Shown: piece after piece, positions 25,206-60,846 of the stretch | Layout: each line of letters begins with the position of its first letter | How positions within the stretch are numbered: the first letter of the stretch is position 1 | Sequence record: KT919972.1 | DNA length: 64,000 nt | Reading direction: 5' to 3' (one strand) | Notes under the pieces: generated by a model | The model's input: only the letters and a program-made list of their open reading frames with translations | The model's database searches: none | Told to the model about the DNA's origin: nothing | Translations under genes and position numbers: made by a program

Positions 25206-25847
25206 ATGGAATTACAACTCTTAATTGAAGACTGGGGTTTATCTAGCGGTTGCGCTGATAGCTTCGGTGAAAAGCCTCTTGTTGAAGCGAAAATGCCCAC
25301 GGAAAAGGGCGGTGACTTGTACATCGAAGGTATTTTCATGCAATCGAATGTCGTAAACCGTAATGGTCGTCGATACCCGAAAAAAGTCATGGAAAATGCT
25401 GTATCTAAATACATGAAAGAACAAGTCAACACGAATCAAGCGTTGGGCGAGCTTAATCACCCAAGTCGTTCAAACGTTGACCCCGCTGAAGCTGCGATTC
25501 GAATTACTGAGTTGTGGTGGGACGGCGATAACGTAATGGGTAAAGCTATCGTACTAAATACACCGAAGGGACAAATAGTTCGAGGTCTGATCGAAGGTGG
25601 TTGGGTACCGGGCGTGAGTTCAAGAGGTCTTGGTTCAGTTAAGCAAGTTGACGGCATCAACGAAGTGCAAGATTTCCGTCTTACAGTAGGCGTTGATGTA
25701 GTGTGGGGTCCTAGTGCACCTGCTGCTTACGTTAAACCAGTAACTGAGTCAAATGAAGCTGCTAAGTCAGTAAAAACAGAAGAAATTACAGAAAGTAATG
25801 ACGCTGAATTTGCGAAACTAGCGGAAACGTTAAAAACTCTCTTATAA
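25206..25847 (+). CDS. gp21: Prohead protease gp21
   Basis: LYIEGIFMQSNVVNRNGRRYP, ALGELNHP, PGVSSRGLGS and DVVWGPSAP motifs. Confidence 0.97.
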   Translation: MELQLLIEDWGLSSGCADSFGEKPLVEAKMPTEKGGDLYIEGIFMQSNVVNRNGRRYPKKVMENAVSKYMKEQVNTNQALGELNHPSRSNVDPAEAAIRITELWWDGDNVMGKAIVLNTPKGQIVRGLIEGGWVPGVSSRGLGSVKQVDGINEVQDFRLTVGVDVVWGPSAPAAYVKPVTESNEAAKSVKTEEITESNDAEFAKLAETLKTLL

Positions 25848-25850
25848 ATA
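25843..25850 (+). promoter_or_regulatory. T4-type late promoter (gene 22)
   Basis: TATAAATA overlapping the gene 21 stop codon. Confidence 0.88.
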
Positions 25851-26752: not shown

Positions 26753-26760
26753 TATAAATA
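26753..26760 (+). promoter_or_regulatory. T4-type late promoter (gene 23)
   Basis: TATAAATA upstream of gp23. Confidence 0.9.
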
Positions 26761-26798: not shown

Positions 26799-28343
26799 AT
26801 GAACCTAACTGAAAAATGGAAAGAATTGCTTGAAGCAGACGGTGCGGAAATGCCAGAGATTGCGACTGCAACTAAGCAAAAAATCATGTCGAAAATCTTT
26901 GAAAACCAAGATCGCGACATCAACAACGATCCAATGTACCGTGACCCACAGTTAATCGAAGCATTCAATGCTGGTCTAAACGAAGCTGTAGTTAACGGTG
27001 ACCATGGTTACGATCCGTCTAACATCGCTCAAGGTGTTACTACTGGTGCAGTAACAAACATCGGTCCAACTGTAATGGGTATGGTTCGTCGTGCTATTCC
27101 TCAGCTTATCGCATTCGATATCGCTGGTGTTCAGCCAATGACTGGCCCAACTAGCCAAGTATTCACACTTCGCTCAGTATACGGTAAAGACCCGCTAACT
27201 GGTAAAGAAGCTTTCCACCCGACTCGTCAAGCTGACGCTTCGTTCTCTGGTCAAGCTGCTGCATCAACAATTGCAGATTTCCCAACTACTGGTGCTGCAA
27301 CTGACGGTACTCCGTACAAAGCTGAAGTAACTACTTCTGGTGGCGACGTTGACACTCGTTACTTCCTAGCACTTGGCGCTGTTACTCTAGCAGTTGCAGG
27401 TGAAATGACTGCTACAGAATACACTGACGCAGTTGCAGGTGGTCTTCTAGTTGAGATCGACGCTGGTATGGCAACATCTCAGGCTGAACTACAAGAGAAC
27501 TTCAACGGTTCAAGCAACAACGAGTGGAACGAGATGTCATTCCGCATCGACAAACAAGTTGTTGAAGCGAAATCACGTCAATTGAAAGCTCAATACTCAA
27601 TCGAGCTTGCACAAGATCTACGTGCTGTACACGGTCTAGACGCTGACGCTGAACTTAGCGGTATTCTTGCTAACGAAGTTATGGTTGAGCTTAACCGCGA
27701 AATCGTTAACCTAGTTAACTCTCAAGCGCAAATCGGTAAGTCTGGTTGGACTCAAGGTCAAGGCGCAGCGGGTGTATTCGACTTCGCAGACGCTGTAGAC
27801 GTTAAAGGTGCTCGTTGGGCTGGTGAAGCTTACAAAGCTCTACTAATTCAAATTGAGAAAGAAGCGAACGAAATCGGTCGTCAAACTGGTCGTGGTAACG
27901 GTAACTTCATCATTGCATCACGCAACGTAGTTTCTGCACTATCAATGACTGATACTCTTGTTGGCCCTGCTGCACAAGGTATGCAAGACGGTTCAATGAA
28001 CACTGACACAAACCAAACTGTGTTCGCGGGTGTTCTAGGTGGTCGCTTCAAAGTGTTCATCGACCAATACGCAGTGAACGATTACTTCACAGTTGGTTTC
28101 AAAGGTTCTACTGAAATGGACGCAGGTGTGTTCTACTCACCATACGTACCGCTGACTCCACTACGTGGTTCAGACAGCAAGAACTTCCAACCTGTAATTG
28201 GTTTCAAAACTCGTTACGGTATTCAAGTTAACCCATTCGCAGATCCTACTAAGGCTGCTGAAAAAGTTGGTAACGGCGCGCCTGTTGCTGCTTCAATGGG
28301 TAAGAACGCGTACTTCCGCAGAGTATTTGTCCGTGGCCTTTAA
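26799..28343 (+). CDS. gp23: Major capsid protein gp23
   Basis: MVRRAIPQLIAFDIAGVQPMTGPT, KSRQLKAQYSIELAQDLRAVHGLDA and FQPVIGFKTRYG motifs. gp21 cleavage site LNE|AVV. Confidence 0.99.
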   Translation: MNLTEKWKELLEADGAEMPEIATATKQKIMSKIFENQDRDINNDPMYRDPQLIEAFNAGLNEAVVNGDHGYDPSNIAQGVTTGAVTNIGPTVMGMVRRAIPQLIAFDIAGVQPMTGPTSQVFTLRSVYGKDPLTGKEAFHPTRQADASFSGQAAASTIADFPTTGAATDGTPYKAEVTTSGGDVDTRYFLALGAVTLAVAGEMTATEYTDAVAGGLLVEIDAGMATSQAELQENFNGSSNNEWNEMSFRIDKQVVEAKSRQLKAQYSIELAQDLRAVHGLDADAELSGILANEVMVELNREIVNLVNSQAQIGKSGWTQGQGAAGVFDFADAVDVKGARWAGEAYKALLIQIEKEANEIGRQTGRGNGNFIIASRNVVSALSMTDTLVGPAAQGMQDGSMNTDTNQTVFAGVLGGRFKVFIDQYAVNDYFTVGFKGSTEMDAGVFYSPYVPLTPLRGSDSKNFQPVIGFKTRYGIQVNPFADPTKAAEKVGNGAPVAASMGKNAYFRRVFVRGL

Positions 28344-28386: not shown

Positions 28387-28428
28387 ATGTCTGAAAAACG
28401 TGTATAATCATGGTAAATGGAGAATAAT

Positions 28429-29145
28429 ATGAAAGAACAAGAAAAGAATTACAACTACATTTACAAGATAACGAATAACATCAACGGTCATTACTATTAT
28501 GGTAAGCGTTCATGTGACTGTCTACCTGAAGAAGATTCATACATGGGTTCTGGTGTCGGGTTGCATCGTGCGTATGAAAAATACGGCATTGAAAACTTCA
28601 CGAAAGAAATCGTGTCTTTGCATGATACTCACTTCGAAGCGTATGAGGAAGAAGCTCGTATAGTTACAGAGAATATGATTAACAGCAAAGAATGTTATAA
28701 CATGAAAACGGGTGGACTATACAACTCATACACGTTCACAGACGATGTTAAGTCGAAAATATCAGATTCGATGAGACAATATGCGCTAGATAATGGTTAT
28801 GCTGAACGTATGCGAGAAGTTCAGAGATTGTCACAGTCTACTGTCTCAAAGATGAAACGCGCACTTGCTTGCAGTAAGCCGAGAAAATACACGAATGGTA
28901 AAGCAGATACGAAAGATAATCATACAGCGTATATGATATGGATTCTTAGAAATACAGAAACGGGCGAGGAAATTGTCAGCTATGACGGTCTAGGATCTTT
29001 ACCAATTAATAAAGGTACTGTGTTTAGTAGAATGCAACGAATGGGTATTAAGAAAGATAGAACTTCTCACATTGTTGTTTCGTGGGGTCAAGGGAAGAAC
29101 AAGCATATTGAAGTTGAAAGAATGTCAGCGGTATGTTGGCTTTAA
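28429..29145 (+). mobile_element. Free-standing GIY-YIG homing endonuclease (Seg family, SegD-like position)
   Basis: YIYKITNNINGHYYYGKR...YMGSG..L.RAYEKYGIENFTKEI...EE...YNMKTGG. Start ATG 28429 follows GGAG. Confidence 0.9.
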
Positions 29146-58404: not shown

Positions 58405-59229
58405 ATGGCTATCAAAGATAAATTGGAAGAACTTATTGCGTCGGTTCACCAATGTACTACCAAAGACGGTGTAGTTGAAATCGAGAAACTATATACGCAA
58501 AAGAAAAAAGAACTCGGGGCGAACATCACACCGATGATGGACATTCGTGTTCGAGACGCAATTCGCGGCAAAATCACCATGTTTGACAAAGAATCTGCTG
58601 CTGAAAAAGAAGAAGCGGCTATGAAGAAACAACAACAAGAAGCTGAAGCAATTGCAGCTAAACTTGATGAGGGTCTATTTGTCGTTTCGGAAAAAGATTT
58701 CTTCGAACATGAAACCGTTGTGAATGAGTGTGCGATTGACGCTGCGTGTATCATGGACGTGGATTCAAGCATTCCTTCAGTTGGTCATAAAGAATTGACT
58801 AAAACATTATCTGAAGCGTGTGAACACGTTGGTGCTGTTGGTAAAGTGTTTGTACCTGAAGCTCAGAACAAGGTTTTATCACTTCAAGAGCGCGTTGAAT
58901 TATTTGAATCGTTCTCTGATGTCGATGTTGCACCGAAAGGCGTGATGTTTGCTGAAGTAGAGACTATGATTCAAAAAGGTATCACTCGCGTGTTTGCATT
59001 TGTAGAAGCGAACAAAGTAGCTGAGTATCGCCGTCTAGGTCGTCACTTCCTACGTGTAGGTGGAACACGATTCGAGATCGTTGAAGTCAAGAACAAAGTA
59101 CCATCTAGTACTATTGAAAATCTGATTCGCGAAGATAATCTGCACGAATTCATGCGCAGCGTACCATTACCACTTGATGAAGCAGAGAAGATCTTTGATC
59201 GTCAACTTGAGCAAATCTTGGGGGCATAA
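58405..59229 (+). CDS. Hypothetical protein with degenerate HIGH-class nucleotidyltransferase-like C-domain
   Basis: 274 aa. Coiled-coil N-half, then PSVGHKEL, LSLQERVELF and KVPSS.I..LIREDNL.EF...VP patterns. Confidence 0.55.
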   Translation: MAIKDKLEELIASVHQCTTKDGVVEIEKLYTQKKKELGANITPMMDIRVRDAIRGKITMFDKESAAEKEEAAMKKQQQEAEAIAAKLDEGLFVVSEKDFFEHETVVNECAIDAACIMDVDSSIPSVGHKELTKTLSEACEHVGAVGKVFVPEAQNKVLSLQERVELFESFSDVDVAPKGVMFAEVETMIQKGITRVFAFVEANKVAEYRRLGRHFLRVGGTRFEIVEVKNKVPSSTIENLIREDNLHEFMRSVPLPLDEAEKIFDRQLEQILGA

Positions 59230-59708
59230 TGAGTGTAGCTAAACGTGGTGCAGATGGTTTTTATGCTCTTCGTCTGTCTCGTTTGCTTCATCTTCGTTTT
59301 GAACGTTGGGAAGCATATCGAATGGGTATCATCGACGCAGATGGTAAGAAGTTGCGTGACCCTGTAACTGCACAAGAGAAAAGTAACTGGACGATGTTTC
59401 ATGTTACTGTGAGAAATATCAAGCGCATGGTTGGTGCATTACCAGGTGGTAAAACAGCACTTGATTATGGCGCGTCTTATTTGTTGCTGATTGAGCTTGC
59501 AAAAGAATACGGGTTATCTGAAGATTTCGCGAAAGAGTGTATTCGAGTCGAAGAAGCTGTTGTTGCAGGTGATGCGGGTGACGGTAGTAGCTCACCAGAG
59601 TCGATTGCTTCTGGTGAAACGACTGGTGCTGTAACTAATGCAGGTCCTGAAACTATCGGTAAGAAAAAGAAAAAGAAAAAGCTGAAGAAGTTCAGACATT
59701 TCGAATAA
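59229..59708 (+). CDS. 61.1: gp61.1-like protein with gp23 N-arm-like C-terminal segment
   Basis: YALRLSRLL...F..WEAY.MGIIDADG and EK..WT.FH..VRNIKR motifs. Directly upstream of primase, as in T4. Confidence 0.8.
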   Translation: MSVAKRGADGFYALRLSRLLHLRFERWEAYRMGIIDADGKKLRDPVTAQEKSNWTMFHVTVRNIKRMVGALPGGKTALDYGASYLLLIELAKEYGLSEDFAKECIRVEEAVVAGDAGDGSSSPESIASGETTGAVTNAGPETIGKKKKKKKLKKFRHFE

Positions 59709-59714
59709 TAAAAC

Positions 59715-59736
59715 GCCTCGGAAACGGGGCTTTTTT
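59715..59736 (+). terminator. Terminator after 61.1
   Basis: GCCTCG-GAAA-CGGGGC followed by T6. Confidence 0.85.
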
Positions 59737-59738
59737 AT

Positions 59739-59767
59739 GTTTATCGTATCGTGATGCCGTGTATAAT
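59739..59767 (+). promoter_or_regulatory. Promoter upstream of primase (GTTTAT-17-TATAAT)
   Basis: Consensus -10 and a T4-early-like -35. Inverted repeat CCGTGTA/TACACGG spans the -10. Confidence 0.65.
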
Positions 59768-59787
59768 CACTACACGGAGGTTGAATT

Positions 59788-60846
59788 ATGCAAATATTGA
59801 TTGATATACAATACGCCAAGATGCTTCAGCATCGATTACTACTCCCTACGGTGCATAGTCATCGTCCATTCAAAATCAATGCAAGATGCCCGATTTGTGG
59901 TGACTCGAAAAAGAACAAGTACAAGACACGTTTCTGGATTAATGAAGTTAAGACACGTTCTGGTGAGATTCATTTACGTTGTAGTTGCTGGAACTGTGAC
60001 TATAACGAATCGCTGTATACTTTTTTGAAAGATCACGAACCATCGTTGTTTTCTCAGTATCGCGTTGAGTTATTCAAAGAGCGCAATTCCCGTGAGCGTA
60101 AAGAACGCGAACCTGAACCAGTTGTTGAAAAGAAAGAAGCGACTGTCGTTGAGAAAGAACAAGAAGAGCAACTTTTCTATAATATCACTGCCCTTAAAGA
60201 TGGTCATGTGATGCACAAATACCTCGAATCTAGAAAAATCCCTAAAGACAAGTGGCATTTGCTTGGGTTTACTCGTGGCTGGTCTCAAATGGCTAAGACG
60301 CTTCGCCCAGATTTGTACGAAGGTGAGATTAGAAATGACCACCCTCGATTGGTAATACCTATCTATAACAAAGAAGGTTTGATTGCTGTTCAAGGTCGTG
60401 CGTTGACAAACAAACATGCTCAACGATACATGACCATTAAAATTGACGACGATTTCAACAAGATATACGGCACAGAGCGTATCAATGAAGATGACCCTGT
60501 TATTTTCGTTGAGGGCCCGATTGATAGTTTATTCCTCTACAATTGCTGTGCTATAGTAGGTGGACAAGTCAGTCCACAAAATGCACCTTATGCGGGGAAT
60601 CGCATTTGGGCGCTTGATAATGAGCCTCGGCACCCAGACGTTGTAAAGCGTCTTCAAGTTCTAATCAGAGCGGGTGAGCGTGTTGTTATTTGGGATAAGC
60701 TCCCACCTCAAATTATTGACAAGAAAGACATCAATGATTTTGTCAAAGCTGGTGTATCCGCTGAGTTCATTCAGCAATACATTTATGAAAATGCCGTTAG
60801 CGGTCTAATGGCTACAAATCGACTTAACAGATGGAAGAAAATTTAA
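59788..60846 (+). CDS. gp61: DNA primase gp61
   Basis: RCPICGDSKKNK.K.RF...CSCWNC zinc finger, RLVIPIY, FVEGPIDSLF TOPRIM, LDNEPR and KKDIND motifs. Confidence 0.97.
   Translation: MQILIDIQYAKMLQHRLLLPTVHSHRPFKINARCPICGDSKKNKYKTRFWINEVKTRSGEIHLRCSCWNCDYNESLYTFLKDHEPSLFSQYRVELFKERNSRERKEREPEPVVEKKEATVVEKEQEEQLFYNITALKDGHVMHKYLESRKIPKDKWHLLGFTRGWSQMAKTLRPDLYEGEIRNDHPRLVIPIYNKEGLIAVQGRALTNKHAQRYMTIKIDDDFNKIYGTERINEDDPVIFVEGPIDSLFLYNCCAIVGGQVSPQNAPYAGNRIWALDNEPRHPDVVKRLQVLIRAGERVVIWDKLPPQIIDKKDINDFVKAGVSAEFIQQYIYENAVSGLMATNRLNRWKKI

Follow-up and report, generated by a model that had tools for sequence, protein, structure and literature searches.

The window analysed here is a stretch of 64,000 nucleotides from the genome of Vibrio phage phi-Grn1 (KT919972.1), a KVP40-like T4-type myovirus in which the 2.4 kb around gene 61.1 are ~85% identical to KVP40; all window coordinates given below refer to the plus strand. 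The 61.1 orthologue (59229..59708) is an open reading frame of 159 aa, and its identity, originally proposed from the letters of the sequence, was confirmed by matches to PHROG 2086 (E 1.6e-53) and PHROG 1823 (E 2.5e-17) and by its place upstream of primase gene 61. The encoded protein is composed of the following parts: (i) an N-terminal domain (N-domain; residues 1-104, 59229..59540) predicted to be a helical bundle by the AlphaFold2 model and family comparison, (ii) a linker, (iii) a predicted gp21-type prohead-protease site, V107-E108-E109 (59547..59555), aligned with L60-N61-E62 in gp23, the major capsid protein, and expected to be cut after E109, (iv) the segment A110-P140 (59556..59648), found by BLASTP, Smith-Waterman and profile-profile comparison to copy the mature gp23 N-terminus (the N-fist and the beginning of the N-arm), apart from an insertion of 3 residues, and (v) a basic tail, K145-E159 (59661..59705), which in the translation and the alignments has 9 Lys and 1 Arg among its 15 residues.

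The poly-Lys stretch originally noted after the match corresponds to K145-K151 followed by L-K-K. This Lys tract (59661-59693) is encoded by alternating AAG and AAA codons; A-rich runs can be slippery for ribosomes and polymerases. The tail ends in a short hydrophobic/aromatic motif common to the Vibrio-phage orthologues. The C-terminal 8-10 residues of the 61.1 orthologues (59679-59705 in the window; L006-L011) vary by clade: a basic-aromatic motif is found in Vibrio phages, a basic-aliphatic end with Leu or Lys as the last residue in enterobacterial and Acinetobacter phages, and an acidic stretch in T4. These clade-specific C-termini could be docking motifs for different partners.

Gene 61.1 is preceded by a gene for a 274-aa protein with a UvsW.1 domain detected by Pfam (58405..59229). 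Since the stop codon of this gene overlaps the 61.1 start codon (TAATG), the two genes are probably co-transcribed and translationally coupled. Directly 3' of 61.1 lies a hairpin with a T run resembling an intrinsic terminator (59715..59738), and the conserved downstream neighbour is the gene for DNA primase gp61 (59788..60846), identified by PHROG 47 (E 1.5e-83) and by the annotations of identical records. The interval between the terminator and the primase start (59739-59787) contains a TATAAT box and a GGAGG ribosome-binding site, so primase gene 61 may have a candidate promoter of its own; no full sigma-70 site before it was called by a consensus scan.

The capsid gene 23 is located elsewhere in the window (26799..28343) and encodes a protein of 514 aa (Pfam Gp23, E 5e-120; T4 gp23 structures, E 1e-191). 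Its residues 60-98 (26976..27092), the part matched by gp61.1, include the cleavage site L-N-E62 before A63, the N-fist and the start of the N-arm. Directly 3' of the capsid gene is a 242-aa ORF (28417-29145) that resembles a GIY-YIG-type homing endonuclease in its N-terminal motifs. Phages PVA8, D486 and 1.081.O lack such a gene at this place, and thus the ORF in phi-Grn1 is probably a lineage-specific insertion.

Similarity between gp61.1 and the mature capsid protein N-terminus

Residues E109-P140 of gp61.1 (59553-59648) align with E62-P90 of gp23 (26982-27068), with 20 of the 29 gp23 residues identical and one 3-residue gap; our recount of positions and identities reproduced the alignment of the original prediction. 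An E-value had been proposed as a check on this alignment: BLASTP of gp61.1 against gp23 gave 3e-8 with 21/42 identical residues, and a profile built from 12 gp23 N-termini, compared with one from 37 family members, gave 2.1e-13 with 98% probability over 37 columns. The Smith-Waterman score of the two proteins was 91, whereas 2000 shuffles yielded 33.6 +/- 5.1 with a maximum of 65. When the whole window was searched in six frames, the 61.1 tail had a single other match, namely the capsid gene (E 2.4e-8). The profile match extends from P3 of the cut site to approximately nine residues past the N-fist, and no similarity between the two profiles was found upstream of P3. The N-domain was also considered as a homologue of the gp23 propeptide, and neither BLASTP nor profile-profile comparison revealed any such relationship.

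The match had been described as starting exactly at the gp21 cleavage site of gp23. The PDB chains of mature T4 gp23* (456 aa; 5vf3_A and others) start at residue 63/64 of the window gp23, and the E65-A66 junction of full-length T4 gp23 is aligned with E62-A63. Because the T4 chains begin at this position, the described start holds by homology to the T4 structures. The first 25 residues of gp23* constitute the N-fist, an element peculiar to T4-like phages (PMC9958956); the matched segment, originally called the mature N-arm, thus comprises the 25-residue N-fist and the start of the N-arm as defined there. The N-fist is in contact with four subunits, two from its own capsomer and two from the adjacent one, and the N-fist and the I-domain linkers jointly make up the Soc site (PMC9958956). 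In the unexpanded head, gp23 residues 66-105 are disordered and reside inside the shell, probably touching the scaffolding core; the same region is the location of the length mutations A66D, A94V and G97S (PMC9546572). While gp61.1 shares with the gp23* N-terminus the 37 homologous columns, it differs from gp23* in lacking the HK97-fold body, in having a Lys tract in place of the rest of the N-arm, and, in the Vibrio-phage group, in the 3-residue insertion.

At the DNA level, most synonymous positions differ between the 61.1 segment and the gene 23 segment, and where the residues agree, the codons also agree in 42% of cases within genomes versus 40% between genomes in a set of nine. These values rule out a recent duplication or gene conversion of the gene 23 segment and indicate an old likeness kept at the protein level.

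Co-variation of the segment with gp23 had been suggested as a further check. To measure it, the 61.1 tail was paired with gp23 of the same genome in 12 phages. With 11 genomes, own-genome pairs scored 82.5 versus 79.2 for cross-genome pairs (permutation p 0.005; 0.001 when permuting within clades), and this set contained lineage-specific coincidences, e.g. in Klebsiella phage Lychee and Providencia phage PSTRCR_121. Upon addition of Vibrio phage 1.081.O as the twelfth genome, the scores were 81.25 versus 79.58 and significance was lost (p 0.14); in Vibrio phage D479, no capsid gene could be found. Co-variation is thus unproven and not robust, and we regard the similarity as resting mainly on a shared set of positions conserved in both proteins.

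The gene 61.1 family and its N-terminal domain

We define the T4 gene 61.1 family as PHROG 2086 (long form) together with PHROG 1823 (short form). The window protein matches PHROG 2086 by residues 1-153 and PHROG 1823 by residues 102-152, and T4 gp61.1, a member of PHROG 1823 (E 4.5e-32), matches positions 109-154 of PHROG 2086, i.e. the tail part. Gene 61.1 is directly upstream of primase gene 61 on the same strand in the window and in T4, RB5, myPSH1140, S16, JN02, CHI14, Ac42 and PSTRCR_121, and occupies the same place in PVA8 and D486. A tblastn search with the 159-aa protein retrieved 615 phage records, the hosts being Vibrio, Escherichia, Klebsiella, Acinetobacter, Aeromonas and others. 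A HMMER search retrieved 1156 relatives, many of which match residues 1-100 only and have other C-termini.

Conservation of the putative cleavage site was assessed in 48 sequences with a gp23-like tail (36 representatives and 12 genome copies). The P1 residue is Glu in all 48, in the gp23 register in 44 and with a one-residue shift in 4. The P3 residue is Leu in 24, Ile in 7, Val in 7, Met in 5, Phe in 3 and Cys in 2 sequences, i.e. hydrophobic in 46/48 and Leu or Ile in 31/48; gp23 of the same 12 genomes has L-x-E at the cut. Of the L/I-X-E pattern originally cited for T4 gp21, the family thus keeps Glu at P1 and a hydrophobic P3; the window protein itself has Val, not Leu or Ile, at P3. The commonest residue accounts on average for a share of 0.61 in the site and the gp23-like block, compared with 0.52 in the N-domain and 0.34 in the linker. 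No other part of the family is as well conserved as the gp23-like block, which holds 3 of the 6 invariant columns. The segment evolves faster in gp61.1 than in gp23, with a mean pairwise identity of 65% versus 77%.

AlphaFold2 modelling with the family alignment predicted the helical N-domain with pLDDT 85-96 for residues 11-70 and a disordered tail. The N-domain model had no fold match in the PDB and only uncharacterised homologues in BFVD; no Pfam family, NCBIfam family or PHROG function was found for this domain. T4 gp61.2 was tried as the missing N-domain of T4 and was rejected for lack of similarity. The N-domain is widespread in T4-superfamily phages with varied C-termini and extends to Pelagibacter phage HTVC008M and marine contigs, where it lies near a primase-sized gene and is again followed by different C-termini. 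In HTVC008M and the marine T4-like contigs, a DUF7207 gene (PF23837) stands in every case before the N-domain gene, the ends of the two touching or overlapping, which makes a conserved gene pair (L021:6563-7453, L022:733-1623, L023:1490-2450, L024:2135-3106). Relatives from marine T4-like contigs have a Gly/Ala/Pro/Asn-rich tail instead; a region-restricted search for a source of this tail in the capsid protein of the same phage found no capsid-sized partner, and no GenBank phage with such a tail was found. Larger C-terminal parts are fused to the N-domain in some relatives (P0141, P0062, P0100, P0153). One of them, P0141, has a polynucleotide-kinase-like region (PHROG 415, E 7e-5), and another, P0153 (652 aa), has eight stretches matching the first part of the N-domain. 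A Pfam scan of 35 long relatives found no domain in the C-terminal extensions.

Many GenBank and UniProt records name the 61.1 product 'major capsid protein', 'capsid protein' or 'capsid vertex protein'. The protein has no match to the Pfam Gp23 family (PF07068), its homology to gp23 covers 37 columns, and it is predicted to consist of a helical N-domain and a disordered tail. The label 'major capsid protein' is an annotation carried over from a motif of ~30 residues and is wrong for the whole protein.

The T4 short form, its targeting sequence and expression

In T4 and RB5, the ORF of gene 61.1 is 54 aa long and immediately precedes gene 61. Its tail is homologous to that of the long form, and ten residues stand in place of the ~105-residue N-domain. 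These first ten residues have 7/10 in common with IPII and IPIII of the same genomes, and the first seven are common with IPI. They end with I-K-E, and the gp23-like block begins immediately after it. In IPIII, a capsid-targeting sequence (CTS) occupies the first ten residues, of which 4 and 7 serve targeting and 8 and 10 serve processing (PMC9026906); T4 gp61.1 keeps an aromatic residue at position 4, Phe at 7, Ile at 8 and Glu at 10. A six-frame search of 99 kb of T4 and RB5 DNA with a strict targeting pattern detected only the internal-protein genes and 61.1; a relaxed pattern was less specific. The strict pattern has no match in the phi-Grn1 window, and the N-terminus of the window gp61.1 is unrelated to it. 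Judged by these alignments, the N-domain is replaced in T4 by a tag with an established role, namely entry to the scaffolding core and removal by gp21. A cut after I-K-E, between E10 and D11, would expose an N-terminus of T4 gp61.1 aligned with that of gp23*. The T4 targeting sequence thus appears to support prohead packaging and gp21 cleavage independently of the similarity to gp23.

Comparison of gp61.1 with known head proteins reveals both common and distinct features. Like IPI, IPII and IPIII of T4 (and Ip4, Ip5 etc. of other T-evens), T4 and RB5 gp61.1 combine the ten-residue targeting pattern with a Glu-terminated gp21 site; the predicted mature part is small and basic, and the RNA is early as for ipI and ipIII. 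Unlike them, the window gp61.1 has a helical N-domain of ~105 residues in place of the ten-residue tag, and its predicted mature part is a disordered copy of a capsid N-terminus rather than a folded anti-restriction protein. IP genes are hypervariable (PMC3012670), whereas 61.1 is conserved and syntenic across the family. For the N-domain as a targeting propeptide, a functional precedent is provided by giant phages: head and ejection proteins of SPN3US and phiKZ have propeptides of >100 residues, which a prohead protease related to that of T4 removes after Glu and whose presumed task is to bring these proteins into the prohead (PMC5694885). This analogy is by function only, and no sequence or fold relation between the N-domain and these propeptides was found.

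Gene 61.1 of phi-Grn1 lies in the early replication-gene block, and no TATAAATA late promoter was found near 61.1 in the window, T4 or RB5. Six T4-type TATAAATA boxes are present in the window versus ~3 expected, including those at 25843-25850 and 26753-26760, just upstream of gp22 (25871) and gp23 (26799). The T4 61.1 RNA is classed as early, and the gp61.1 protein was not detected in the time-course proteome (PMC9697503 supplement). However, ipI and ipIII are classed as early-RNA/late-protein in the same data (PMC9697503 supplement), so that early transcription of 61.1 is no obstacle to a role in the head. The main text and supplements covered here of a T4 head mass-spectrometry study make no mention of gp61.1, which is weak evidence because tryptic methods easily miss a short Lys-rich peptide. 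We found no virion proteomics report mentioning gp61.1 and no literature on the protein beyond gene tables.

Proposed role and alternative explanations

Incorporation into the prohead followed by gp21 cleavage is the best-supported mechanism because of the aligned protease site, its conservation throughout the family and the targeting sequence in T4. We propose that 61.1-family proteins may be minor components of the prohead interior that are processed by gp21, and assign this reading a probability of about 0.45. Packaging and cleavage had been put forward in the original prediction; the fusion of the CTS pattern to the motif in T4 and RB5 gp61.1 speaks for both, while the window protein lacks a CTS and a late promoter and has V-E-E109 with Val at P3, as opposed to the Leu/Ile-x-Glu of the CTS-bearing internal proteins.

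According to this proposal, we infer that (i) gp61.1 would co-assemble with the scaffolding core, (ii) it would be targeted there by the CTS in T4 and by the N-domain and/or the gp23-like segment elsewhere, and (iii) gp21, which cuts after Glu (PMC5694885), would release a basic peptide of 44-50 residues with a new N-terminus matching that of gp23*. More speculatively, the N-fist-like part of the freed peptide might occupy sites that normally hold the gp23 N-terminal region, first on the scaffold core, prior to cleavage, and later, once the head has expanded, on adjacent capsid subunits, and the basic tail might contact DNA or very acidic core proteins. The prohead core protein gp67 of RB5 (L002:13875-14120) has at its C-terminus a long, almost purely acidic run, and it is conceivable that this run is an electrostatic partner of the gp61.1 Lys tract inside the prohead. 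The roles originally imagined, i.e. docking of the released peptide in the lattice, tethering of DNA or action of the protein as a protease decoy, are conjecture.

The main alternative, though rather doubtful, is that gp61.1 is a cytoplasmic early protein. The N-domain would then serve the replication/primase module or a host factor, and the gp23-like segment would be a short linear motif for a partner that handles new gp23 (a chaperone or a translation factor), or an antagonist or decoy for defences that sense capsid motifs. The place next to primase gene 61 and helicase gene 41 is conserved from Straboviridae to the Pelagibacter phage and marine contigs, the T4 RNA class is early with no late promoter, the tail is predicted to be disordered as is usual for short linear motifs, and defences sensing capsid proteins by short motifs exist (Lit, CapRel; PMC13581612, PMC3014915). 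This explanation leaves unaccounted for the start of similarity exactly at a protease site with Glu at P1 in 48/48 sequences and the exchange of the N-domain in T4 for the targeting sequence of internal proteins; moreover, an early copy of a defence trigger is expected to be harmful unless it binds without activation. The Gol peptide, which activates Lit through EF-Tu, is likewise a short segment of the N-terminal quarter of gp23 with its own life as a binding motif. The Gol region presumably lies just downstream of the segment copied in gp61.1, at the point where gp61.1 turns into poly-Lys, and would be a part of gp23 other than the copied one. Apart from the tail, the N-domain may have its own function unrelated to heads, since it is predicted to be well folded, is more widespread than the tail and is always near the primase gene.

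Returning to the prohead proposal, its most elaborate version would describe 61.1 as a free-standing spare N-fist that is delivered to the prohead, freed by the maturation protease, and either fills donor-less N-fist sites next to the gp24 pentons and the portal, or tunes expansion by competition for these sites. The N-domain would in this case be an unrecognised capsid-targeting module, combined elsewhere with other cargo, such as a beta-rich domain or a polynucleotide-kinase-like one. Taken as a whole, this version is quite unlikely.

It is very unlikely that gp61.1 serves to regulate the prohead protease or to compete as a substrate for it, with the primed-side sequence of gp23 being used to buffer or time gp21. 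The site and the primed-side residues are indeed aligned with those of gp23, and other protease modulators, e.g. Inh, are encoded in the T4-type head-gene region, but conservation reaches ~34 residues past the cut, far more than the P3-P1 positions that known gp21 sites need, and the conserved basic tail is left without explanation. In addition, a decoy would be useful only at gp21, i.e. inside the prohead, and therefore this alternative is largely a sub-case of prohead incorporation. Finally, an evolutionary relic is already disfavoured and highly improbable. In this scenario, the 5' part of gene 23 was duplicated long ago and joined to an unrelated gene, leaving a segment that is functionless today. 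Homing endonucleases, which could give rise to partial duplications, do adjoin gene 23 in several of these phages, and co-variation is weak, but the segment is the best-conserved block in 37 diverged representatives despite randomised synonymous sites and survives as a free-standing 54-aa ORF in T4-genus phages.

Few morphogenetic pathways are as well studied as T4 head assembly, and to our knowledge the list of T4 prohead core and internal proteins is considered complete. If the proposed role is true, 61.1, a gene present in >600 sequenced T4-type phages, would be a new entry on this list. On the practical side, the label 'major capsid protein' carried by 61.1 in many database records should not be relied upon. 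The gene combines a protease site, a copy of the interaction element at the N-terminus of the capsid protein and, in T4, the address tag of internal proteins. As a head component, gp61.1 would be a specific candidate for densities that head reconstructions leave unassigned, one of which is mentioned in PMC9546572, and its role would suggest how a piece of the capsid protein, acting in trans, could complete or regulate the capsid lattice.
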